Origin: Auanema rhodensis
Taxonomy: Eukaryota; Animalia; Nematoda
Reading direction: 5' to 3'
Length of the DNA: 64,000 nt
NCBI GenBank assembly: GCA_964057225.1
Contig: OZ059894.1
Location: 17,360,001-17,424,000, forward strand
Position 1 is the stretch's first letter; the number at the start of each line of letters is the position of its first letter. The notes beneath the pieces are model-generated. The model did no database searches, had not been told where the DNA came from, and saw only the letters and a list, made by a program, of their open reading frames with translations. The translations under genes and the position numbers were made by a program. Shown one piece after another: positions 18,109 through 35,869 of the stretch.

Positions 18109-21100
18109 ATGATACCATTATCTAGATGTTTGACTAGATTCAGGTCAGTTCGACTGAGGAACTATGTTAATCCAGCTTATTTACAAGATAGGTATGTATT
18201 TCTTATGTTTTTCACACTCAGCTATAGGATTCAATGGATGCTATTATATTTCAGGATAGAACATAGAACAGAAGATGAAATTTTGCTACGAACCAAAGAT
18301 TTTAGAGGAGTTGCCCCTAGGCATATAAGAGTATTTTTATTTGACTTCATTTTTTTAGCATTTATGGTCTTACAGAATTCGAAAAATATTACCCCCGATA
18401 TTCATTTAGCACATATAAAGCACACATTGAAATCTAGTGGTAGAGTATCCAGTAGCTCATTTTTCAATAATGTGTTAAAAGAGATTGAAAATAATAATGG
18501 TTTTGTTTACAAATAAGTCTTAAAAAAAATTTTTTTAAGGAGTTTTACTATCAATTTTAACAAAGTTTTCTGAGCAGTGGGTACCAATGCTATTAATAAG
18601 CTGCGGAAATTCTATGTCCAATACTCATCGATCTACTAGAGAAATAATTTTAGATAGATTATGGAATGCTTTTTTGTACCACAGTTTGTTTTGTTTTGTT
18701 TTTTCTTCTAATATACGTTTTTGAGAGATACCTATATCAATATCGTCATATAATAATCGTTTACGGTCTATGCTGGATAACAAAATGTCTTTTTCCGTCG
18801 ATGAAGAACTTTCAGTATTAACGGAAAAATTGTACTTTTAAAGTTTTCGTTTGGAATTTTTGATAAGTTCTACGAGTTATAGAAATTTAACAGCCAATCA
18901 AGAAACGTTTCAACTTTTACTGGAAAGGTTTTCTCATCTAGGTGATATTGATGCCTGTAGAAATTTGGTTTGTTTTAAACTATAATGAAATTCATTAATC
19001 TTCTCTTAGGTTTATGAAATGGCTAAAAACGGCTGTATTGTTGATTCAAAGTGTAACCAGTCTTTAGTCTATTGTTTTGCTCTTAGAGGGCATGATGCAA
19101 AAGCTGACTCTTTGGTTGAGGTTACAATCATTTTGAACACTATGAATTTGTTTTGCATATTCCAGCAAAGTAAATCCAAATACAATGAAGAAGCGCGAAA
19201 TTTGGCAAATGGTGCATGCGCTAAAGCTGCGGCTTTCAGAGGGAATACTGCGAGGCTTCGACAGGTATCGCCGTTTGTTTTGACGATATATGATATTATT
19301 ATTACAGATTCTTAGGCGTTCTGTTAATAAAGAAAAAAAACTCACCATCTCCTCTGATGATTTATTTGAAACAATATGGCTTCTTTCAGAAAATGGAGAT
19401 AGACTGAATGAACAAAAGAACATAGTAATTATTGAACAAGTAATTTATTTACAAAGAACTATGCTAAAATCTGTTTGATATCTTTAGATTCTTAATGCGA
19501 TGCCTCACTCTAAAGGATTTTTTCATCTTCTTGTAAGAGAAATTGAGCGACATATATCTCATGATCATTTTTATTCTGCTATATGCCTTTTGGAAGATGT
19601 CAAACGTGTTTCTGACTGTTTGAAAAATCAGCAAAGATCGAGTAAGTATAACTGTTTCTGAGCGTAATGTGTATTGTACTGTTAGAAATAATGGAACAAC
19701 TTTTATCCCGGTTAAGCCATCAACTTATTCGTAATCAGGTTCCAATAAGCCAGGTATTAGATATTGCTCACAGAATCGTTGCTCTTTTCAAGAAAGAACC
19801 TGTTGGGTTAGGCTCTAAGATAGTTTCAATGGTAATTCAAGCATTTATAGATCTCGTTTTCATGATAATCTTCTCCATGCAGCACTAATGTACAAAGATC
19901 TTACTATAGATCAACGAATAGATTACTTAACTGCATTAGTTGACGTTGTTGATCACTCAAGAGAACGCCCACATATTATTTTACCTTTAATAGTTCTGTA
20001 GGTTTCGTACCTCCAGTTTTTTTATTCGATAATCACAGATCGCCAGATGTTATGGAACGGCTGAAGGTTATATTTCGATGTCATATTCTGGGATATAAAG
20101 ATATATCTTCGCTTGGTAATGAGCTTATTAATCTAATTCTTCAGCCCATTTTTGGTAATTTTTCTGATTTTTATTTATTTGTTAGAACACTATTTCAGAT
20201 TATTCATTGGCTGCTCGACGTGAAACAAAAATGCAGAAAAGTCATAAGATTCTTAAAAGCTTCAAAATACCTGATAATGTGATTTGGAATCTTTTTCATA
20301 TCTGGTATAAACAAAGAGTTGATGAAGAAAGCAAGCTTCCAGTTGAACAACTTCAAGCACCAACTGCAAATGAGCTAAAAATGTATGCTGATTATAAACT
20401 ATGAATATTGTCAGAAGAGAAATTTAATTTTTTTTCTTACAGTTGGCTTCGAGAGCAGTATTCTCCAATTTTCGAACAAGATAAAATAAATAATTCTTCA
20501 GTAAATAGAATTATGCCTACATATGATCGTTTAAAAGCTATAATAATTGATGAAAGGGTTTGTTAGAAATGAAAAGCATGAGGAAAAAAGAATCAATTCA
20601 GGATGCTGCAAAAGCTGTAACCTTTTTAAACCGATGTGGCTGGCCAGACGATACCAATTACGCCGAAATTGGATCACAATTGGTTGATCTTGTCTTGGAC
20701 CTAGAAGACTGGCCTACAGTAACAAAAACCCTTTCCTCTTTGTATGTTTAACTGAGTTATATATTTCTTTTATTCTAATTTATAGGTCATCGCAAAGTGA
20801 ATCATGGACGAAAACGCATGGAGAAAATTTTTCTCCACTTAAAAATAATCATTTGCTTTCAATTTTACGCCGTTTAGTTCAAGAAGAAGGAGAGTTCTCT
20901 ATTAGACGACTGATTGAATTCTCATATGAACTCAAGGGGATGTTCCCGAATGGTAGGTATTAAAGATTAAATAAGACTTGAGCGCTGGTTTTTAGCTGTG
21001 GTCTCATACGACACATTTTTCGACACTCTTTATGAGTACAACAGGCTTTTTCATAAAATTTTCGAAGTTGGTTTTGTTTTTGTTCTCGACAGGATACCCG

Positions 21101-22209
21101 AATTTCCAGAAGTTGACTGAATTAGATGTGCCTAAGGTTGATGAGAGTATGGAACTCCTCCGAACTCTTATTAAATTGGATATATTATCGTTGCACGCGA
21201 ATGAAACATTAACAACTGTGTTTGTTAATAATGTTATCAAAAAGTAAATGAATTTCACGAGTTTGGTTATTAGGTTTTTGATTATAGAATTGGTCTCGAG
21301 GAGGGAGTTAATACCTGGATGAAGTTTCAATCAAGTTTGTCCTGTTCTAACGCTATCGTAGCACTTATCCGACATTGCTTAAGTAGAAATGATGATTTAT
21401 CTACCAAACGTGTTCAATACAGTATGTTTACCTATTGTTAATTAAATTTAAACTTTTGTTTAGTTCTGCATAAAGCTCAAAATTTCACATCTCAATCTCG
21501 GGTGCATACCCTATATTGTGCTGTCTTGTTGTCATCTAGAAAATATGAGGAAGCCGTTAAATATATCATTCAACATAAGGTATGCATTACTGCTCTTTTT
21601 GTATCATTACTTACTTTTTTTGTAGAATAACATTAATCCAAATGATTGTATATCATCTTTCAAATTAATGAACGCTTTAAAATTCAAAAGAGTAAGCCAT
21701 TACATGAGTTTAAAATTTGAAATATTATTTAGCTGGATGAGGAGTTTGTGTATAATTTTATTGATTTGTTCTTAACACACTCAAGCATTATTAGCGACTG
21801 TTCCACAATTAAATCATTGCAAGTCGAATGTATTAGGATTTGTCGTAAGGCTCAAAATCCTTAAAATAATGAACACATTTTATTTTAAGAACTTCATGAT
21901 GCTGGTCCACTGTCACTAAAAATTTATCAAAGATTTTTAAAAGCTGGCCTCGACCTTGAAGATGATGAAAAGAAAAAACTGTGGGAAGTTGTTGGAAAGC
22001 ACGATGAATTCGCTAGGTAAATAAGTAACTTTTTTCGTAGCCATCTTTTTTTTTTCAGAAAATGGCTATATCTTCCCGATGGCATGCTCCGTCTAGGTGA
22101 AAATGATCCGATTAATCAGGAACGAGATACTTTTGAAATTCATAGTAAACTAAGAGCAGATATTGAAAGTATGTCATCATCGGATTCAAAAAAAGAAATA
22201 ATTAGTTAA
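18109..22209 (+). CDS. LRPPRC: LRPPRC-family mitochondrial PPR protein A (full length)
   Basis: Arg-rich presequence MIPLSRCLTRFRSVRLRNY. The segment LLISCGNSM...LDRLWNAF...SSYNNRLRSMLDN...ANQETFQLLLERFSHLGDIDAC...LVYCFALRGHDAKADSL matches, from recall, the LRPPRC N-terminal PPR block (LLLRSCG...HYNALLKVYLQN...[22 protein letters not shown]). Confidence 0.8.
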
Positions 22210-22305
22210 GATTTCATATCAAAATAGTTTATTAGAACATATTGTTATTTGTTACTTGTTGTTACTGAATCACACGGGTTTTGTATTAAAATTTATTTTA
22301 TTTCT

Positions 22306-22896
22306 TCAACCCCTGATAAGTATGATAATAATCAAAATGTAAACATAACATAGTTTGCAATCTATTGGATTACTTAAACTTTCTTGTAACCCCATCAAAT
22401 TTCTGTTCAGAAGACCTTGACTTTGTGTGTTGCAATTAGTAGTGTTGCAACAGCAAAATTCAGCTCTTGACAGATGCTCTAATTTAGCACCGGGATATCC
22501 ATATTGAATTGAAGCAATAACATCTAACTAGAACGGCATCAGTTATCATTAAGCAGTATGTGAATAGCAGAACCTTTCCAACTTCAGAAAGTTGTGTGAA
22601 ATCTTTACATGAATTGTCTAAGCTATATACGGCACACGCACTTCTCAGAGAACAAGATCTTTGAATGCCTTCACTTATTCTACCAGACATATTAACAGCA
22701 AGGTAATGAAAATAACAATCCTAAATTGTTTATTTCGTTTATTACATTGTCGTCATAACTTTGGACTGACAGTTTCGAAACGTGAACACTTTTTTGATCC
22801 AAGACCTAACAGATCATCAGTATCCATACAGGATAGTGCCTTGCCTGAACCAAGAAGACTAAGTAGAACAGCCGCGTAGCAATATATTCGAATCAT
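22306..22896 (-). CDS. Ly6/uPAR (three-finger)-like, probably GPI-anchored protein
   Basis: Three exons: signal peptide MIRIYCYAAVLLSLLGSGKA, LSC start, IQRSC, terminal CCCNTTNCN motif, hydrophobic C-terminus CYVYILIIIILIRG*. Confidence 0.75.
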
Positions 22897-23544
22897 TTAT
22901 ATGCTTGTTCTACGTTACACGTGTTATTACGTCAAAAAGAAGTAAACATTGCTTTGAATATCGTTAAGTTCAATAAAAACTATTTATTCTTATTTTCTTA
23001 TGTAATCCAAATAATAGATATGATCCATACCAGTTTGAAATTGAAGCTAATTAAGATTTTAAAACATTAGCTATGTCTATTTAAGAATCAAAAATTCAAT
23101 GAAACTTTGCCTCGCTGTTTTCTAAACTTTTTCCAAGTATTGTTTCAACTTTACTGTAGAAATCAAAAAGCTTCACCTACGGGCGGTCGGTCGAAGTTTT
23201 AACGACGCGCTATTGCGTATTGAAAATAATTGATCTGTAGCTTTTAAGTTTTAATATTATTTAATTTATGCCATTGAAAGCTATATGTATGTTTCCATCT
23301 TCTTTATGTGAGAAAAAAAAACAAATTTTTTATAACAAATGCAAGTGCGAAAGAAAATAATTTTACTAATCAGTATAAAATTTGTGCTTTATATCGTTGT
23401 TCAGACATCCTTTAGTATCCAGAAGATCCTTAATATTTTTTGAAATTTCATTTTCAATTTTGTATTACATAGTATTCCATAAATTTCAATTCTTCAGGTA
23501 ATAAAATTATGAGCAGGTAGTCCACATATCTAATATGCAGAAGA

Positions 23545-26395
23545 ATGTTTCGTTTTTGCATTAACGGAGCCTTTAGGTATTTTATAATAGTTGAATAATA
23601 TTCATAGATATGTTAAAGATATTTCCAACAATACGGAGTGCGCCTCACTAGATTTCAATATAAACATAACGGATATCTTCTAAACAATCCTAAATCACAG
23701 GATAGGTATAGTACTGAACTTTTATTGTAATAGTATCTTATTTTAAGTCATTGGTTTATCAGGCAAGATGCCTCATTAGGTTCATATGAAAATGATCGCT
23801 TCTTCCCTGATATGTAATTAATAGAGTGGTGTTCTTATATATTAAATCCTATGTTCTAGTACTTCTTTTGACGATTTTGGAATTCTCTCTCTGGATCGCT
23901 CAAAGTCGTCTGAAACCGTTAGTACCCTTGGTGAAAAGTCTTTCATTGATAACTTGTTAAGGTAGTTAAAAACTCTTTCATTTTTCCATTTGTTCTTTAG
24001 AAATGATGCTTATAATGTATGTGATAGTGTTATTCCAACAACTGTTGATATCAAAGAAATGGGAGAAACTGGTGATGGTATAGAGCAGCTTGAGGTTTGT
24101 GATCTTACTGTTAGTATCTGTATTGCAACTTATTTTTAGATTCTCCTATCTGAAGGATATGATGTGTCGGCTGTTATAAATGATTTCCGTAGCTCACAGA
24201 TCTCTGATATTCCTAGTCAGGAAAATGTTTTAAACAAAGAAGAAGTACAGGAGAATTCTGAGTAGGAGTCATCTGTAGTTTAATATATAACTATGCGTTT
24301 ATAGTTCTCCATATCTACTACCGAAAGATATGAATCTGCCTTATAGATCACCAAGCTTCATTCCTTCAGAAAAATTATCTACTCGTGTATATTTGGGGAA
24401 CAAACGAAGGTTAAATCGTATGGTAAATCCTTTGTCTTCCGGTATTTTTTCAACTTTTATATGTTTTGGTTCTAGTCGTTTGTTTTAGATTTCACCAACT
24501 CTTCCGAAACTGCTGTACATAGTGCTATACCTAAACGCATAGAAAATCAAGTTGCTATTCCTGAAAGATTTGATTCTGTCGAACGATATGAGAAATGCAC
24601 GATCGAAGAAGTTCAAGCTGCTCTTAGAATCGAGGTATTTTCTTATTCTGAATAGTTCTCAGTTGCAATTGCAGGACATATCGCCTTTAAGAAATCTGCT
24701 TATGAGTAAACAATGGCCTGCAACAAGAGATATTAATTCTATTATTCCTATTGTGTTTGATTTCATTGTTAAATATTCGAAGGATACCGAGGAAGCTTTG
24801 ATGTTTTTCCGTGACTTGTAAGTACTTGCTTACGTTTTATGAACTATTTTGTTGATTCAGTGCTGCATCCAATAGGAGGTCATTTGTTAGAGATGAAGCT
24901 GTTCTTGATTTAGCTTTTCGAGCCGTGAATGAAGGTGGAGTACCTTTGGCTACTCAGCTTCTCATTCAAGTCAGAAACATGTTTTTGACCAAAGCACGTA
25001 AGTATATTATCCGAAAACATCATATATCTTATCCTTCTTAGCCATGTCGGCCAATAATAAAGCTAAATCAAGATTGGTTAAATTATACAAATCATCATTT
25101 GAGAAAGGTAACTTTGCTAAATTATAGTGCACCAAAAAGCAATTTTGTTAAGGCTCGGTTGAAGAAGCTCAACTTTTAATGCAAACTCTTCTTGACAAGG
25201 GCTATTCGACAAATGTTCAACCATTCCTGCGCGTGGCTGCTCAATGTCTGATAGAGAAACAGTATGTTTTTAATAATTACATTCCTGATAATATTGTTCA
25301 CTTTCAGGGAATCCTTTGGTTTGGTATTCGCAAATTGGTCGAAGTTAGCTTCCTCATATGGTGATATATCAGGGTCTGAATATGTGTTACAACATGCTCT
25401 ATTAGATTCGGATGCAAAACAGTCTGCCCTAAAAATAGGCAAGATTTTTTTGTTATTTTAAAAATTGTGTTTTTCAATTGCAGGTGAAGTTCTGAAATTC
25501 ACCAAACTGTATCGTCATCCGTTCAAGAGCATAGCTGATATAATTTGTGCTTATATTCGTTTTGGACAAATCAACAAAGCTTATGAGTTAATGTCCAAAG
25601 TATGTTATTTGATTTAGCTTGTTCTTCAGAAGTAATTTTAGTTGTCTATTTCTGGAAAGTATTACTATTTGCCAGTCGATCAATTTTTACAAGATGATGA
25701 TGGATTAGCTCATATAGAAAATTTCGCTGGTTTGGTTTCTAAGTGTATGTATGGGGAGAAACGACGTGGTGGTTCCAAGAGCAAGGATACCTGTGTGGAG
25801 GTATGGTGCAGTACGTAAATCCTCGATTGTGGGCGGGGGTCCCTGGTTCGAATCCGAGGACGCGAATGTGATAGCAGGCGGATCGTTACTGATTTGCTTG
25901 TACTAAATAATTCGCAATAATAATGAATTGGAGTCAAACTTGCCTGATATTCGTGTCAGGTTGGCTCAAGAACCAATCAACAATAGTTTTTTTTTAGAAT
26001 GTAACAGTAAGTACTGAATTAATGAAAGTACTTGATGCACATTGTGGTACTTCTTTTGCCACTCAGTCCTCTTTTGTTAGTCTCAAGAAGAAAAATAGCA
26101 AAAAGGAGCATAAGTGAGTTTTCTCTTCGAGTTTAGTATCAGGTATGTATTTATTTCAGGAAAATGCATCGTGTTGACGATGAACAGCTCCATAAACTTT
26201 CTCGTGATATCCAAGATGCATGGATCATTTTAGCAGGTATGCATATATATATTTTTGGCGGGTTGTAAATCATCGGATTTTTTCTTAGAATCTAATAAAA
26301 ATTACGAATCAGCTCAAAGGTTGCTTACTTGGTGCCAAACACATCGTGTTGAAATTTCATCAAATCTTTCAAAAAGAGTATCTCAACTCAAATAG
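23545..26395 (+). CDS. LRPPRC-family protein B (acidic N-terminal region plus LRPPRC C-terminal helical module)
   Basis: Presequence-like MFRFCINGAFRYFQQYGVRLTRF. EEAQLLMQTLLDKGY...VFANWSKLASSYG...IADIICAYIRFGQINKAYELM resembles the C-terminal module seen in genes A, C and D. Confidence 0.65.
25797..25860 (+). pseudogene. Degenerate tRNA-like element (His/GTG-like), probable Pol III internal promoter
   Basis: A-box-like TGGTGCAGTACG at 25804, anticodon-like stem CCTCG-ATTGTGGG-CGGGG, B box GGTTCGAATCC at 25845-25855. The acceptor stem does not pair. Confidence 0.65.
25861..25955 (+). ncRNA. Putative box C/D snoRNA (intronic)
   Basis: Terminal stem CGCGAAT/ATTCGTG, C-like box GTGATAG at 25868, D' CTGA at 25889, C'-like ATGAAT at 25923, D CTGA at 25944. 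Lies in an unusually long (197 nt) intron with a T9 run at 25987. Confidence 0.6.
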
Positions 26396-26602
26396 TACAT
26401 ATTAGAATAAAATGCTGACTAGAAACGTATATTTTCGATTAGGATTATCTTGTTATTCATATTGTTGTTAATTGTTATTTTATAGATTCATTGATAAATT
26501 TGTTAAATTTACTATATTTTGATATTGTGTGTTGGTTTCATTCCATATACCTGAACTAGTATAATTTGTATTTTAATGCTTTTTTATCTAGCTTGGCTTG
26601 CG

Positions 26603-29600
26603 ATGCTTGGGCTGAGTAAGAGTGGTTTGAGACGGTGAAATTTTCTCTCAATATGTTTTCACAGTTCTCCTTTTCAGGTTAACACGTCAGAGAAGATTCT
26701 TCGCTGTTGCGACGAATGCTTCAGATTCTGCGGGCTCAGAAAATGTACCCAAAAAGCACCAGAATCACAAATCTTCTATTAATTTATCGGAAGAACATAT
26801 AAGTCTTCAGAACAAATATAGAAAAAGTTTGGTAACGAAAGACTTAAAGACTATTCATGAGCTTATCGATGCGTAAGTGATTACCTATTATTTTTTTTAA
26901 TTGTTTTGCTCTGAAGTGTCGAATGGAAAGATTCTGCTGTCATAGGAACCACTCTTAACTTTTCCATTAGTTTGCTTTCTAGTCCTTCGCAGAACATTGC
27001 TTCTCTTTCTGATAGAGAGTTGGGTGTGGTAATACTGTCTATTGTAGCTGTACATAATTCATGCCCATTAAGATTATTTCTATTTTTGGCGAAAAAGCCG
27101 ATTCAACACCTCCTTCGAAACGATCTGAACATTTAAAAAATGCTATCGATATTTTAAATGAACGAGGTATATTGAAAGAAAATGCCTTTACTATAAAAAA
27201 ACTTTTAGGTGCTGTATTGGGCCCTCTTGCTAAAAATGCTATTCTTCGTGCCAAACTTGATAATGGTGAAACAGTTAATGTGATTGAAACGCTTCAAGAA
27301 TGGGAACAACTCGGCCTCAGTCCAAATGAAGAAACTTATCAAGTTTTAGCACGTTCTTATGCTCTGCAAGGAAATGTGCAAGGCGTGATGTAATTTTATG
27401 ATTTAATGTTGAGCTAACGATATCGTTGAATTGTAGTAATATTATCAACCATGTGAAATCTTCTGGCTTAACTGTTAATGATGTCTTGATTGAAAGTATG
27501 CTGCATGTGGTGGCTAGGACAGGATCATTCGAGCAATCCCGCAAACTTTTAGTGGTGAGTATGGAACATTTTTTAAAATATTACTTAATAGTGATGTATA
27601 GAAGTTTTCCACTCCTGCAAATGATGTCAGACTTCGATGTGCTATTGCCAAGGCAGCATGTGCTCGTGGTGACTACAAGGAAGCAGTTGAAATTGTTACT
27701 GGTATTCCTTCAACTTCCAAGCCAAACATAGTGAATTTCAAGTCTATCGTATTTAGCAATTTTATATCATATTTAGATTGAAAATAACAAGAATATACTT
27801 GAACTGTATTTGGATTTGTTAGAGGCAGATCAAATCTCTTTATCCGAAGAGCTTAAATTATTCCTGACTACCATTCCTGATGGAAGTACACTAACAGAAT
27901 GGCACCAAAACCCTAAAGTTATTGCCAGAATTCGTAAAAGTAGATATGAGGGCAAGATTTTACCTGCTTTGAATATGTACAGCATTGTGCATAGTGCCTA
28001 CCGATCACCAAGAGTTGAGGACTTGCTTCGACAGTCTGCCTCCAGTTATTTCCATGGACCTGGAATAACCATGAAAGACGTAGACTTTATTACAAAACGA
28101 CTTCATGAACAAGGATTAATTGGGTTTTTATCATTTTACAATTCTATAGATATATTGTTTTCATTCTAGTGACGCTGATATATTTTTACTTGATTCGAAC
28201 TTACCAAGTTCTCTATTTATTCAGCATTTTAATAAAATCCGAAATAGTGATAAGATCTATTCTTACTTAGCTACGGAATCAAGCAAACGATACAAATTTG
28301 CTAAAAGACTCTGTCAACCTGTAAGTTTTATGATTGATGAAAAATGTACTGTCTATTTTGCAGTTGGTTGACGAGAACTCTAGCTCTGAGGAACGCGCAT
28401 TGGCTTTAGCTAATGTAGGTATAACCTGCCTCTCACCTTCCAAAGAAATAAACGGTGCCGAGTTTTACAACTTACTTTACAAGCTTGGTGGCCACGGTAG
28501 TGTTCTTTTAAAAACTCTATTGCTATAACTTTTTATTTTTAGATATCAACCTTGTCATCAAAGCTATCCAGAAAGTACCCCAGAACTTCATACGTAAAGA
28601 ATTTGCTACTGCTTTTGTTCAAAAGCTATTATCCGATTCAAGCGATGCCTTAGCAGATGAAAAGCTTAATCAGTTATTGCAAAGGTTTTTACATATAGCT
28701 GTATTCAAAAAATTTAAATGACTTTAAGTGGTGCTGTACGCTCTATAAATGCATCTCGTCTCTTCAAACAACTCGAAAAAAGAGTTTTGAATCGACGTCG
28801 TAATGAAGAAGAAGACCAGCAACAACTAAAAACTGTTGCATCTTTAATCGCTCTTGATTTTCCAGGTTTTTTCATTTTTCATTTAGACTTTACGTTTTTA
28901 ACTGTAATATTCGGAATTATAAGTAGTTACCGAACCTTTTCTATTCGATTACGTGGGTGGAAACTTAATTGCAACCGCTCAAACTGCTAGAAGATTAAAA
29001 ATAATTGTTACACGTATCTATGCAGACTAGAATTTTTTAGACACAAACACATGCATCCCAGCAATTGTTTTTACTTTTTATAATTTCAGAAGGAAGAGCC
29101 AAAGAACTGTATGCTGTCAATCATATTGTGAACTTACTCAAGAATGAATCTGTTGATGACGAAAGAGCTCGTATTCTGATCAGCTTTATGGAAAAAGAGG
29201 TTATATCCTTAAGATTCCAATTCAAACTGTTCGATGTTTCCAGGAAAGAATCGGCATACCATCGGCCTCGTTAGTGGAAGCACAGAAAACACTCCGTGAT
29301 CTTAAGCAAGACGAAAAAGCTAACCTTTTATTCAAATTGAAGAGAAAAAATACAGTAAAATTCTTTTTCTTCTTTTTCTTCGTATATGAATCATTTAGAC
29401 TCATTCGCGGTGGATGGATTCAAGCGTGGAGAAATTAGAGGAAGAGTGGCATAGAATACGGTCTGATCCTAAATTCTCCAAAGATGTTGTCTCTGCTCTT
29501 CATGATGTATTTTTCCGAAAGTTGCATACGGAAAAGGTTACAGCTTTTCCAATAATTCATCTTACACATATTATTCAGCCTGCCAACCACAAAATTATTT

Positions 29601-31107
29601 TGAAATATTTAAATACAGTTAAGAAATTGGAGAAGGGCATTCCTTCATCTACTATTCGTTTATGGCAAATGGGAATGATGTCTTCATTGGAAAAGAAAGA
29701 CATGGATGCTGCTTTTGGCTTATGGGAAATTAGGTTTGTTATTCTTCGTATCAAAATGAAATACATGAGACTCTAGACCAACTAGCCAACCAACTTTGTC
29801 GGATCATGCTCTCTGCTATATTTCGACTTTGTTTGTCAATGGTGATATCGAAAAAGCGAACGTCATTTGTGAGGATCTTCGTGCATCAGCAGCAATTATT
29901 TCTAGTCGCTCACTTGAATCTGTAAGTTTTAAAATAAAAATTTAAAAGTTAAAAAAAAAAAAAAAATTTATAATTTAATCTTTAGGTTAGCAAATTATTA
30001 GATGGTACCCCTGTAGAAAAATTGAATACTTTGACGGAATACCTATCCAACAAATTTGGATTAAAGGCTGCTATTGCCCGTCGCATTGTTTATCATGTGA
30101 AGATCAATGAAATGAATCAGCTAATTGAGAGGTAAATTACTGATCATATGATTTTATACAAATAGTTATATTCTAGTGGCAAGTTAACAGAAGCTTTTGA
30201 TATTGCTTGTGAAGAATCACAGATTACTGGAAGTCCTTTTGGGCATTTTGAGCTTTTTGCTGCTGCATTCAAGAAGTAACGTTTATTCAAAATGTGAATC
30301 CTCATGTTTCCGATTTAGTGGAGATGGAGCTTTAGCCAAAAATGTTCATAATTTGATTAGAAGTTACGTTGGCCAAAATAATGCGACTCTTGATACTGCA
30401 TTGGCTTTCCTATTCGCTGGTCTAAATCAAGAAGCTATGAAGCTTTTCAGTGTAAATACCAACGCTTTCTAAATTTCAGTTTTTTTCTTTGTTTTAGAGT
30501 AAAGGTTTAACAATTACCTCTCGTAAACTTCGTCATTTTGTTAATCAATGTGTGAATGGAAATAAGGTAATTTTAAATTTAGTACCAGCTATTTACAATA
30601 AAACTTCCAGCCTGAGGTTCTTAAAGGTCTTTTTATGGGATTGAGTGAAGGTGAAAGAGCCTCAACTGTAGATTTAAACGATTTACTATTGGCCCTGTGT
30701 AAAATTTACTGTGAGTTGAATTTTTGTTCTTCTATCTTTCGAACCATAAATCATTGTCATGTTTTAGATAAGGCAAATGACTTAAATGCCATTGCTAACT
30801 TAGAGCAGGAAGTAATAAAGCGTTCCTTCCCTGTAGACGAAAAAATTAGAAATGTATTTGAAAGTGTTGAAAAGCAGGTTTGTGGTTTCGGATATTGAAA
30901 ATTTCTGTTTTTCAAACTGTTACAAACTGCTAAGTAACTGGTGAACTTGCTTAATACTTTTGGGTTTCATTTCGGATCAATTGTTCGACAAGCTTTTTTT
31001 TTATACAAAAAAACGTAGTTTATGTTCCAGTTAGTTAACAGTTGTACCAGGAATTTTCTAAAAGGCTATTAATAACTTTTTTTCAGAGGAGGTCATCAAA
31101 GAAATAA
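26603..31107 (+). CDS. LRPPRC-family mitochondrial PPR protein C (full length)
   Basis: Presequence MLGLSKSGLRRLTRQRRFFAVA. PPRs GLSPNEETYQVLARSYALQGNVQGV...LIESMLHVVARTG. C-terminus LDTALAFLFAGLNQEAMKLF...KLRHFVNQCV...LLLALCKIY matches the LRPPRC C-terminal module from recall. Confidence 0.8.
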
Positions 31108-31375
31108 TCATCGTTAGTTGTTTTTGATATTGTATTGTACGAGTTTTGTTTTTTTATTGTTATAAGTGTTAAATTGAGATAAATATTTTATGATTTAGGA
31201 AGCTCTTAGATTGTTGAATAAAATTGTTGTTTTTTGTGCACATATTGTCGGTGCAAGTTTAATAAATATTCTTTAAAAATATTTTGCAATTCAGTTTTTT
31301 TCGTATTCTCTCAATTATAATACCGTAACTTTTTTCGATGTCGCTAAGAATCAATGAAATAAAAATTCAGATCTA

Positions 31376-32866
31376 ATGGTTCTTTTCGGGTGTTCGGTGT
31401 TATTACGGAGATTGGTAATAACTTCATAGATCATATTATTGATATCAGAATAAATTTAGAGTCTTCGTCTTAACCATACAAATGCATTTAATTTTGGAGA
31501 GCTAGTTTTTTTAGCTAGACATGATCTGCCTAAAGCTTTAGAGAAGTTATCAGAAGCGAGGTCGCTATCCTTTTTGCGTTTTCTTAATATGCGCTATAAT
31601 TCAGATTGGATCATGATATCCCAGATTGGGGAATGATTAAAATAGCCAGTCAAGGATTATCAACAACTCTTAAAATTGAGGAAGTTAATAAGCTTCTCCA
31701 ATCGCATTATAACGATACAGGGGCAGGGAATAGGCTCGGTCAGATTTCTCTTATTCACTCGTAGATAAATCTGTATTCTAGCTAGGAAAGCCAATGTAAC
31801 AGAAGATCAAGTCATTGCGGCTTTGAATCGTATTTTACAATCTCAAAATGGCCTAGAAAAGTCTATAAAATTTTATAAAATGCTCATTGATCTCAAGTTT
31901 TGCACAAATAAGGACAGGTTTATTTTACCAATTGTAGCATGTGCGTTAGAAAAGTAGGCTAAATTGCACTTTTGTTCTTGATTAGACTTGTGTTCTTTCA
32001 GAAATGGTCTGAATGAGACAGTTCATATTTTGAACGAACTTTTAGAGTTTGGTAGAGTGAAGTCATTGGCTATAACACTATGCACATTACAAAGAAGTTC
32101 ATATAGTACATCTAATGAAAATGATAAAACAAAAGGTTTACTCTTGTTTATATAATTTATTACTAATTATATCAAAAATAGTTTTTGATTTTATAACTAA
32201 ATATGCGAAGTCTTCAAAAGATTGGGTTGTTGGATTTGTTATGTTTGAAAATGGTCACGGCGTGAGATGGGCTGAAGATATCTATGTTAGTTATTATAAC
32301 AAAGATTTGCTTTTTCAAAACAGTTTTTCATTTTCATTTTGCAAAATTTGTAGAGCCGAAAGATCAATTTAACAGCTGAAGGTGTTCGATACATGTGCAT
32401 GCTGGCAAAGAGACTGAAATCAGTAAGTGCCAAGCTGTCAGATTTGATCTAATTTATTGAAATGCTGACGTTTTAACATCTTAATGTTTCAGACCGAGGC
32501 ATTGAATGAAATGTTGAAGTTATCGTCATTGCTGAAATTGGATACTTCCGCCAAAGTTCAAATTTATGAACATCTCATTCAGATATACGGCAATTTGAAA
32601 TTAGTTTATTCTTAAGCATTCTTTGAAACATTTTACAGGAAAGCGAGCTGAATTAAATGATTTAGAACGTATTGGTGAACAAATTGCATTAGAGGAAAAC
32701 AGAGAAGAATATACTAAATCTCTTTATCAAATTAAGCATTTTTACAAGTAAGAGTTCATGTCTTTGTTCGTATGAGATGACTCAAGTTGTACTTATTCTT
32801 GACCTTTCCAGATGTGCCGATAGACAACCGAGTGAAAAACTTTTAAAGATTATTCGAGATATCTGA
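31376..32866 (+). CDS. LRPPRC-family protein D (short, C-terminal module only)
   Basis: Presequence MVLFGCSVLLRRLSLRLN. KFYKMLIDLKFC...FILPIVACALEKNGLNETV...LTAEGVRYMC...EALNEML...IYEHLIQIYGK aligns by eye with the C-termini of genes A-C. Confidence 0.65.
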
Positions 32867-33739: not shown

Positions 33740-35869
33740 ATGCAGCTTTCTCGATTTAGTCTTGCTGTTCTATTTGTATTATTGGTAAGTTAGAAAAGAA
33801 TATTCCTTTAACCAGTCTTCAAGCTTGATACTTCTATCTGAAATAAAGGACTTTATTCATTTCATTTCTTTTCAGGGCATCAACTATGTCCAAGCTGATG
33901 ATAACACTTCGATCAGATCGAAACGTTTGGCTATTCATCCTTCTAGATGGAATATGAAGTTAGTTCTCTTATCATATCTCTCATTTTCTATTTTCTTTGC
34001 AAAAAATAGTTTTTTTTTAATTTTGCAATTTCAGTTTGTGGCCCAGTGGTGAAGTACCATACGATATTGCACCTCATTACACCTTGAGAGAACGTGAAGT
34101 TATCTTATCTGCTATGGCTGAATTTCACAAAGTCACTTGCATCCGATTCCGTCCTCGTAATGCAAACGATCGTTTCTATCTTCAAGTCAATAAATACTAT
34201 AATTTGGAAAGGTATATCACACACAGCTGTTTCAGTTTTTTCCAATCTAATATTTTATCTTCAGATGCTTCTCCTACATCGGACGTCAAACCGGCTTCAT
34301 GTTCCGTACTAGAGAAGGAAACTATGAAACCAGGTGAGCATTTGAAGGTCTTGAATGGAAATATATATAAAAATGCTGTATATTGACAAATGTTTGTTTC
34401 AGAATGAAATTGGACCCTACCTGCTTACTATACAATGGACGCGGTACTGTTATGCACGAGCTTATGCACATTCTCGGATTCTATCACGAACATCAAAGGT
34501 TGGTAATCAATCATTTTTGATGTTCATGTACAACATTTGTACCCTCTCCACAATTATCAGTCCTAAATTGCCAGGTTTGGCATATATTTTCGGCAATTAG
34601 TTTGAACTTGTTGAAAGTTTTGCAAAAGTCTACCAAAGTGCAAGTAATGCAGAAATTACACTATATTTCCAAAATTCAGTATTATCTAACCAAGGGATTC
34701 AACTAAAAATATAATACGAATTTGACCATTTATTTTGTTTTCTTCAGAGACGATCGTGATCCCAGAGTAGGCCGCTTGAGCAACCACTACAACTACAAGA
34801 TCTATCCCAGATAGTACGTTTTCAGTAAAAAAATAGTATATACTAATTTTGACCATCTTTAGCTCCTCTTACTACATGGGAGCCTATGATCCAACTTCAA
34901 TCATGCACTACAACTTCCCTGGAATTGTATATCCAAGAACTTACTTCTCACCATCTGATATCAACAGAATCAACAGCCTCTACAAATGCAAGGTAAATAC
35001 ATAAGTAACATATTTTTAAAAGAAAAACTATTGGCCACACATTACGGAGTAGCACTTTACTTTTGTTTTTCTAATCCCCAAAGAAGTCTTCATCTTACTA
35101 GGTTTCCTTGATATCTGAAGCATAATAGCGAGGACAAAAGAATGATAGATGGAGGGACAAAAAAAGAAAGAGAGAGTGAGAGGAGAATTCAATTGAAAGA
35201 TTTTTCTTATCATCCCTTTCGTAGTATTTTTCTTCTATGAAACTTTAATTCTGAAAATACGTGCTTTGACCAATCTTCTCTCTTTATTTTGCACTTCATT
35301 TCCTGAAAATGGCCTATAACTATTGACGGGGGCCCACGATACAGCCTACGTAATCAGTTTCTTCCCGTACCCACTTGTCGATTTCGTTTTTAGAACTCTT
35401 TCTCTCGCAATACTCATGTTCAATATCTCCCAGACATATATGCTGTCTCTTACGGGTCTGTCTGGTGCAAAACTTGTTTTTTCTTGCGACCCTTTCCTCT
35501 ACCGATGTAGTGTGACGTACCGACGTCAGTAGAGACCTGCACTTCGTTACCCCCCTGTCGTCAGGGTCATTTAATTCCAGTTCTTTTCCGGATACTGGTT
35601 GGATCCCACCTGAAATAGGATTGTTCAATCCTCAAGGCCACACCTCTGTTCCATTTTCGATTTTAACAATAACGAGCACATAAATTTCCATAACAAAACT
35701 ATCTATGCACACACCTACTCACGATTTACAAGCATTTTAAACTTTTAGTTTTTAGAGCAACCTCGTTACCAAGCCAGTCGATCCTACGTTCGAAGAAGTC
35801 CGGTCTTCAGAGGATGAAGCTGTTTCCGATCCCAGCATCAACAACGAACTACGCAGGAAAAGAGTTTGA
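33740..35869 (+). CDS. nas-3: Astacin zinc metalloprotease (catalytic domain only)
   Basis: Signal peptide, RSKR furin site, [60 protein letters not shown] Met-turn, INSLYKC. Closely resembles NAS-3 as recalled. Confidence 0.88.

Follow-up and report, generated by a model that had tools for sequence, protein, structure and literature searches.

Organization of the locus

Four genes, here called A, B, C and D, lie close together in a 64,000-nucleotide (nt) stretch of the genome of the nematode Auanema rhodensis (NCBI GenBank assembly GCA_964057225.1, contig OZ059894.1, positions 17,360,001 to 17,424,000 of the forward strand). We refer to this whole stretch as the window and give all coordinates within it. 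The first-pass annotation described these as four co-oriented genes of the LRPPRC family, a family of proteins with pentatricopeptide repeats (PPRs), and we examine here the gene structures, the relationship of each gene to LRPPRC, and the conservation of the cluster in other nematodes. The arrangement is as described: all four genes are intron-rich and on the + strand, and the outer bounds are exact, with the A start codon at 18109 and the D stop codon ending at 32866.

18109–22209, + strand: gene A, approximately 1000–1020 amino acids (aa) in 24 modelled exons, from a forced-start dynamic-programming (DP) model; presequence-like N-terminus
23545–26395, + strand: gene B, modelled with 18 exons encoding 648 aa; basic N-terminus, acidic region at residues 61–180, and a helical domain spanning residue 257 to the C-terminus
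26603–31107, + strand: gene C, LRPPRC ortholog, 1054 aa in 23 exons; 3′ untranslated region (UTR) extending to ~31236–31267
31376–32866, + strand: gene D, 337 aa in 10 exons; separate RNA contigs of 1.0–1.2 kb; presequence-like N-terminus

The window is AT-rich and most introns are ~44 nt long. A splice-aware DP gene finder, self-trained on the window and using an intron-length prior, gave multi-exon + strand genes across 18–33 kb; the models of A and B are ab initio products of this approach, and for C and D the exon structures are set by spliced RNA contigs. The RNA derives from four public runs of a single study, in which the region is present as spliced contigs with zero mismatches. Fifteen GT..AG joints of C come from these contigs, and the remaining joints fit the offsets in the contig records. 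At the 5′ end of C the contigs extend 238–241 nt upstream of 26917, corresponding to exons 26678–26872 and 26592–26634, and contig pieces place the beginning of the last exon at 31087. The nine joints of D were rebuilt from coverage in 200-nt bins and from the 280 nt of contig that precede the piece at 31781–31953; these 280 nt upstream of 31782 correspond to 31371–31414, 31460–31560 and 31605–31738. Splicing of D with GT donors only was considered and rejected because the reading frame would not close, and a GC donor was suggested by the coverage of the RNA contigs.

32590–32638, + strand: GC-AG intron of D, the sole frame-keeping splice matching the 138 covered bases in bin 32480–32679

With this intron included the D translation closes at 337 aa, ending at 32866, and the remaining 31 RNA-backed introns of C and D are all GT-AG. 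The D contigs are separate from the C contigs and differ from them in depth.

Nearly all of the modelled introns in A and B are 39–63 nt long (40–63 nt in A), similar to the RNA-verified introns. The B model is backed along its length by orthologs, with B residues 35–647 aligning with residues 44–626 of P0001 (8e-68), the N-terminus aligning with P0020, and a multi-species alignment. Gene A encodes ~1020 aa as modelled, or ~1004 aa if 19121–19165 is also an intron. We note that this segment, which the model retains as coding, is a probable additional in-frame 45-nt intron (GTTACA...TTCCAG); it reads VTIILNTMNLFCIFQ and disrupts the PPR spacing. In the database, family and folding searches described below the queries were single exons or orthologs, and the spliced window proteins were compared only locally.

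The N-termini of all four proteins are basic, with the first acidic residue at position 27 (A, C and D) or 39 (B), in agreement with the Arg-rich, acid-poor presequences of the first-pass annotation. Its account of the next part of each protein also agrees with ours, in that A and C carry an N-terminal PPR block (A 101–243 and C 104–245), residues 61–180 of B are net-acidic, and the PPR block is missing from both B and D. Comparison of the exons shows no similarity between the genes, as had been noted at the DNA level, and the only significant pair in pairwise blastp and phmmer comparisons among the four is A with C.

Gene C is an LRPPRC ortholog

Judged by its sequence, gene C is an LRPPRC ortholog that ends where human residue ~1006 lies, since it has collinear full-length homology to LRPPRC proteins and since human LRPPRC is the top match to the C-family profile. 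A search of 1.8 billion representative proteins with the longest exon of C, which encodes 115 aa, gave 14 proteins, all at 36% identity or less; the named matches are mostly from nematodes, and some carry the UniRef name LRPPRC. The C protein is collinear, at 30–36% identity over ~1040 aa, with P0002, P0015–18, P0010 and P0011, and the collinear proteins include strongylid proteins of 1047–1057 aa, an open reading frame from a Logan transcript, and a C. auriculariae protein. Full-length collinear homology to LRPPRC-named proteins is a property of C only and is not seen for A, B or D. A profile built from nine C-family proteins, excluding the window's own sequence, has human LRPPRC as its top match among PDB sequences (8.5e-32, 113 bits), with generic PPR proteins scoring 58 bits or less. 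There are two collinear matches between the profile and the human protein, profile positions 117–245 on human 127–255 and profile positions 866–1041 on human 833–1006, and the corresponding parts of C are as follows.

26999–27604, + strand: PPR block of C, residues 104–245, equivalent to human LRPPRC 127–255; family score 46.1 bits
30190–30826, + strand: C-terminal module of C, residues 864–1031, equivalent to human LRPPRC 833–1006; 37.4 bits, independent E-value 6.7e-9

Gene C thus resembles human LRPPRC (which acts with SLIRP) in its collinearity at 127–255 and 833–1006, its presequence-like N-terminus, and its all-helical PPR architecture. It differs in that its 1054 aa end at human position ~1006, whereas the human protein has ~390 further residues. 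The human LRPPRC complex has no described counterpart of B or D, and no SLIRP-like RRM gene was seen at the A–D locus. When the exons of A, C and D were scanned one by one with Pfam, an approach that short exons make insensitive, only sub-threshold PPR matches came out, all on C; the best is a PPR_2 match to the exon at 27211–27387 (E 0.001, 19.5 bits), which is below the gathering cut-off of 30. Exon-wise searches of PDB sequences gave nothing useful.

Two introns of C, at 28866–29089 (224 nt) and 30878–31086 (209 nt), are long among the uniform ~44-nt introns. The first of these contains an open frame that the finder scored as an exon, but its RNA depth is 0. Rfam and tRNA scans of the 16–35 kb interval, including both of these long introns, gave no matches. 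A repeat is flagged at 29929–29978 within the 64-nt C intron at 29922–29985, and the contigs are apparently cut there.

Conserved order of genes B, C and D

The order B-C-D, on a single strand, is present in all four of the annotated genomic loci checked (C. auriculariae, Necator, Cylicocyclus and A. duodenale), with gene identities in these relatives confirmed by tblastn and hidden Markov model (HMM) mapping. Gaps of ~200–460 nt separate B from C and C from D in C. auriculariae, Necator and Cylicocyclus. In A. duodenale B and C are ~660 nt apart and the D model is partial. In N. brasiliensis B and C are merged in one model, and unannotated D-like exons follow C. Other merged public models imply the same order, joining B and C (P0001, P0020), C and D (P0009, P0011), or all three (P0024). 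Gene D is immediately 3′ of C in all of the genomes or merged models examined, and the B-C-D order spans Caenorhabditis, Heterorhabditis and the strongylids. The three genes appear to be an old unit common to rhabditine nematodes, and their linkage fits a shared job.

Gene A is a different matter. A-like sequence is absent upstream of B-C-D in three of the three other genomic loci inspected for A, and its lack in these upstream flanks rules out A as part of the conserved cluster. The physical cluster of four genes proposed in the first-pass annotation is therefore retained in other nematodes for B, C and D, with A unlinked in the three genomes inspected.

The merged models P0001, P0009, P0011, P0020 and P0024 resemble annotation artefacts of tightly packed genes. 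In C. auriculariae, C and D are joined by a tiny bridging exon with the stop codon skipped. The H. bacteriophora model P0009 also fuses in an astacin (domain at residues 1209–1360), which is the same neighbour as is found downstream of D here.

The intergenic regions on either side of C contain the following sites.

26406–26411, + strand: AATAAA poly(A) signal, 11 nt past the B stop codon
26590–26591, + strand: AG acceptor where the C mRNA and an RNA contig begin, 11 nt before the C start codon; a likely trans-splice site
31261–31266, + strand: AATAAA closing the 3′ UTR of C; RNA contigs stop at 31236–31267
31369–31370, + strand: AG acceptor, a likely trans-splice site, 5 nt before the D start codon and ~100 nt past the end of the C mRNA

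The B AATAAA is separated from the C acceptor by 185 nt, and for both B-C and C-D the distance from the poly(A) signal to the next trans-splice acceptor falls within the ~100–400 nt by which nematode operons are recognized. The layout resembles that of nematode operons in that B, C and D are on the same strand, the intercistronic distances are ~100–190 nt, an AATAAA is followed by a 3′ splice acceptor near the next ATG, and the mature mRNAs are separate; it differs in that no SL2 leader is seen here. On the basis of the spacing, the poly(A) signals and the acceptor sites, together with the conserved order, B-C-D probably constitutes an operon. Each of the four ATGs, including that of A, is 4–11 nt behind a splice-acceptor-like AG. 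The 1.3-kb gap between A and B (22210–23544) has no modelled + strand gene and is a possible promoter region for B-C-D.

Genes B and D are predicted to encode PPR-like solenoids

B, D and their orthologs have no sequence match in Pfam, NCBIfam or PDB, and none of the Pfam PPR models reaches its gathering score with orthologs of either gene. Their relatives are found among the merged models described above. D matches residues 919–1206 of P0009 with 36% identity (3e-59), a stretch that sits between the C-like part and the astacin domain, and a second match to D is the end of P0011. The relatives of B are the N-terminal portions of P0001 and P0020, two models that continue into C-like sequence towards their C-termini. 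B and D have the short motif VFDFI.KY.K in common.

Structural models were built with AlphaFold2 for orthologs of both genes. The model of the H. bacteriophora D ortholog (pLDDT 77, pTM 0.59) has 18 helices and is matched best by structures of PPR proteins (Foldseek E 5e-4; VIA Z 9.9–11.7). For the helical domain of the T. colubriformis B ortholog (pLDDT 72, pTM 0.45) the top matches are PPR or PPR-like proteins, with Z up to 10.7. The solved N-domain of LRPPRC ranks lower among the fold matches (Z 7.1; Foldseek rank 19 for the B model). As modelled, the B and D orthologs show the fold of PPR-type solenoids, and nothing more specific, Z values of 9–12 being common among repeat proteins. The best structural matches are generic P-type PPR proteins with 9–11 helical hairpins, including PPR10, designer PPRs, mitoribosomal rPPRs and the CIA84-like chain 7zkq_C; B and D differ from these in having neither a Pfam PPR match at gathering score nor sequence similarity. 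A language-model feature search with parts of the B and D orthologs placed LRPPRC clusters among the neighbours, and these serve as leads only, the scores being uncalibrated for protein parts.

The C-terminal half of D weakly resembles the C-terminal module of C

One region of D shows remote similarity to C.

32024–32697, + strand: C-terminal half of D, residues 157–303, weakly similar to the C module (C 864–1031)

Alignment of the D family with the C family by hhalign places D 157–303 on C 864–1031 with P 4.7e-4 when three sequences are used. The value is 7.3e-5 with C. auriculariae and strongylid fragments added, 1.2e-4 with A. cantonensis added, and 7.8e-4, at an unchanged place, with the window sequences excluded; fragment alignment rows in which MAFFT had misplaced short exons were left out. 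The match spans 142–145 columns at one fixed place, and reversed-alignment controls give P 0.39–0.53. An HMM of the C module scores D at 9.8 bits, compared with 5.5 bits for the best of 300 shuffles. The N-terminal half of D has no match in C. These alignments suggest that the C-terminal half of D probably derives from LRPPRC sequence, and the data fit either of two origins, duplication of part of C at its 3′ end or fission of an ancestral ~1400-aa gene.

The same HMM scores B at 3.1 bits, a value reached by two of 300 shuffles, with the match at the start of the helical domain of B, and it scores A at 2.0 bits, which 11 of 300 shuffles reached. The hhalign comparison of the B and C families gives P 0.06–0.09. 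An alignment by eye of the C-terminal region of A to the LRPPRC module was also considered, and is unsupported by the HMM test (2.0 bits). By these measures A and B give no evidence of an LRPPRC module. The first-pass annotation had all four genes ending in the same helical module; a signal is obtained for D against C only (hhalign P 7e-5 to 8e-4), the result being marginal for B and null for A.

Gene A has an LRPPRC-type N-terminal block

The similarity of A to C is confined to one segment near the N-terminus.

18557–19120, + strand: PPR block of A, residues 101–243; blastp against the C family 4e-12, C-family HMM 44.9 bits, hhalign probability 96.5%

Residues 101–243 of A match positions 105–246 of the C-family HMM, which is the location equivalent to C 104–245, and a direct pairwise blastp aligns A 152–285 with C 154–268 (E 3.5e-7). 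The span of the C-family profile that the A block matches is also hit by human LRPPRC, and the scores are nearly equal (44.9 versus 46.1 bits). By eye, the block aligns ungapped to the human LRPPRC segment (SCG, R.W, S.YN and GDI positions). Single A exons gave no significant match in exon-wise searches. We regard A as a candidate long LRPPRC-type PPR protein. The first-pass annotation had counted two full-length genes, and for A and C this is apt in size and in the N-terminal block only.

Both C. elegans (C04E6.11 and C14C10.4) and Brugia have been reported to have two LRPPRC-family proteins, which lie on long branches (Bratic 2011, PMC3192837), and Drosophila also has a pair, BSF and CG14786 (PMC3192837, PMC5844317). 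C04E6.11 is the essential gene let-463, labelled 'Unknown' elsewhere. These nematode and arthropod pairs resemble A and C in that there are two long genes per genome that are mutually very divergent; they differ in that A and C are 4.4 kb apart on one strand, whereas the C. elegans cosmid names point to separate places. We take C14C10.4 to be mma-1. Gene A is most likely the second LRPPRC-family gene previously reported in nematodes.

Interpretation of the locus

We think it probable that the locus is composed of an LRPPRC ortholog (C) tightly flanked by the conserved, unnamed PPR-like genes B (upstream) and D (downstream), with A, 1.3 kb upstream of B, encoding a second long PPR protein with an LRPPRC-type N-terminal block. 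We infer that B, C and D would be made together from one operon, and that the solenoids B and D would act physically with LRPPRC as accessory proteins or partners. The presequence-like N-termini of all four proteins make it probable that they are imported and act in the mitochondrial matrix. By analogy with LRPPRC elsewhere, their role may be to bind and stabilise mitochondrial mRNAs and to hand them to the ribosome. The first-pass annotation also proposed that the proteins form a heteromer and are tied to unusual mitochondrial gene expression, both of which are purely conjectural.

Several observations weigh against this interpretation. The A model has neither RNA nor ortholog support, and the B model has no RNA support. 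Outside the PPR block A has no similarity to C detectable by profile, hhalign or module HMM, and no A ortholog was obtained. The similarity between D and C is weak (probability 25–62%, with 13% identity in the window-based alignment), and helical repeats can inflate such scores. The fold matches of the B and D ortholog models all have Z below 13, which in repeat proteins may reflect a mere common arrangement. Profiles of the B and D families did not reach human LRPPRC, or any other chain, among PDB sequences; one of the D-family searches spanned only the N-terminal half of D because sparse columns were dropped. No spliced leader is found in the assembled RNA contigs, and there are no leader letters on the D contigs. 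The basis for mitochondrial targeting is N-terminal composition alone.

A different account holds that B and D have no LRPPRC ancestry and are independent, fast-evolving PPR-like proteins of the mitochondrion, which lie beside C because nematode operons collect mitochondrial genes, and that the likeness of D to C is repeat-driven convergence. We rate this as possible but somewhat unlikely. It is consistent with the lack of Pfam, NCBIfam and PDB sequence matches for B and D, with fold matches to generic PPR, TPR or HAT solenoids, and with the low rank of the solved LRPPRC N-domain (Z 7.1; Foldseek rank 19 for the B model). However, the D-C match of 142–145 columns occurs at a fixed place with or without the window sequences and is lost on reversal, and the B-C-D order is kept across Caenorhabditis, Heterorhabditis and strongylids. 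It is unlikely, too, that D is the split-off C-terminal third of a ~1400-aa ancestral LRPPRC, separated by gene fission and kept directly downstream of C where it is co-expressed. Three points favour fission. C is collinear with human LRPPRC only to ~1006 and then ends, with the human protein ~390 residues longer; D, at 337 aa, directly follows C on its 3′ side in all of the genomes and merged models examined; and the C-module profile weakly touches human residues 1260–1351 (1.7 bits, conditional E 0.002), the place where the D module would be expected. Against fission, that human match is not significant alone, the D-family profiles miss human LRPPRC at E up to 10, and D has its own presequence and start codon.

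The view that all four genes are LRPPRC paralogs derived by old tandem duplication, with B and D being truncated copies that kept the C-terminal module, is quite improbable on the present evidence. The N-terminal block common to A and C, the resemblance of the C-terminal half of D to the terminal module of C, the marginal 3.1-bit module match in B, the motif shared by B and D (VFDFI.KY.K), and the presence of LRPPRC clusters among the language-model neighbours of the B and D ortholog parts all point in its direction. But the language-model scores are leads only and uncalibrated for protein parts, the comparison of the B and C families is weak (hhalign P 0.06–0.09), and the marginal match falls where the helical domain of B begins, not where it ends. 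Moreover, A has no module signal, the N-terminal half of D is unmatched in C, and A is missing from the flanks of B-C-D in the three other genomes inspected. Of the four genes first assigned to the LRPPRC family, C is confirmed as the ortholog, A has the LRPPRC-type block, and D has a weak remote similarity to the C module; B has no detectable LRPPRC relationship and a generic PPR-like fold.

Returning to an LRPPRC ortholog flanked by B and D, a more elaborate version can be entertained in which LRPPRC was split in rhabditine nematodes, such that C supplies the first ~1000 residues, D supplies what was the C-terminal third, now with a new presequence, and B is a lineage-specific PPR-like partner, giving a multi-chain LRPPRC from one transcription unit. 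We consider this rather doubtful. The C. elegans gene ril-2 could perhaps be such a partner. It encodes a novel protein (C14C10.3) with no obvious homologs, and its knock-down by RNA interference (RNAi) extends lifespan, a longevity phenotype of the kind that mitochondrial genes typically give (PMC1183531). Its cosmid number places ril-2 next to the LRPPRC-like C14C10.4, and our guess, from that numbering alone, is that it is an ortholog of B or D.

Implications

The human LRPPRC gene is associated with a disease, French-Canadian Leigh syndrome, and C. elegans mma-1 serves as a model of the gene. The occurrence of LRPPRC and of a second LRPPRC-like gene in nematodes is already known. The conservation of B-C-D as a unit, the PPR-like character of B and D, and the faint kinship of D to the LRPPRC tail are apparently undescribed, and our literature search found no paper linking mma-1 to its neighbours. 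It may be that two uncharacterised PPR-like proteins are always encoded together with the worm LRPPRC ortholog, and, if so, knock-down phenotypes, the specificity of RNAi within the operon, and comparisons with mammalian LRPPRC-SLIRP must consider the B and D partners. The analysis also offers a family assignment, as PPR-like solenoids neighbouring LRPPRC, for proteins that databases leave unnamed or wrongly merge.

Genes neighbouring D

Downstream of D in the window is an astacin-like metalloprotease gene at ~33740–34386 on the + strand. In other nematodes a Metallophos (PF00149) phosphatase gene is found beside the D ortholog or within its large intron (L001 23921–27575; L003 27639–30520; L004 24325–26270; L006 25592–27714), and there is no such gene near D in the window. 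In C. auriculariae, exons of D flank the Metallophos gene on both sides.

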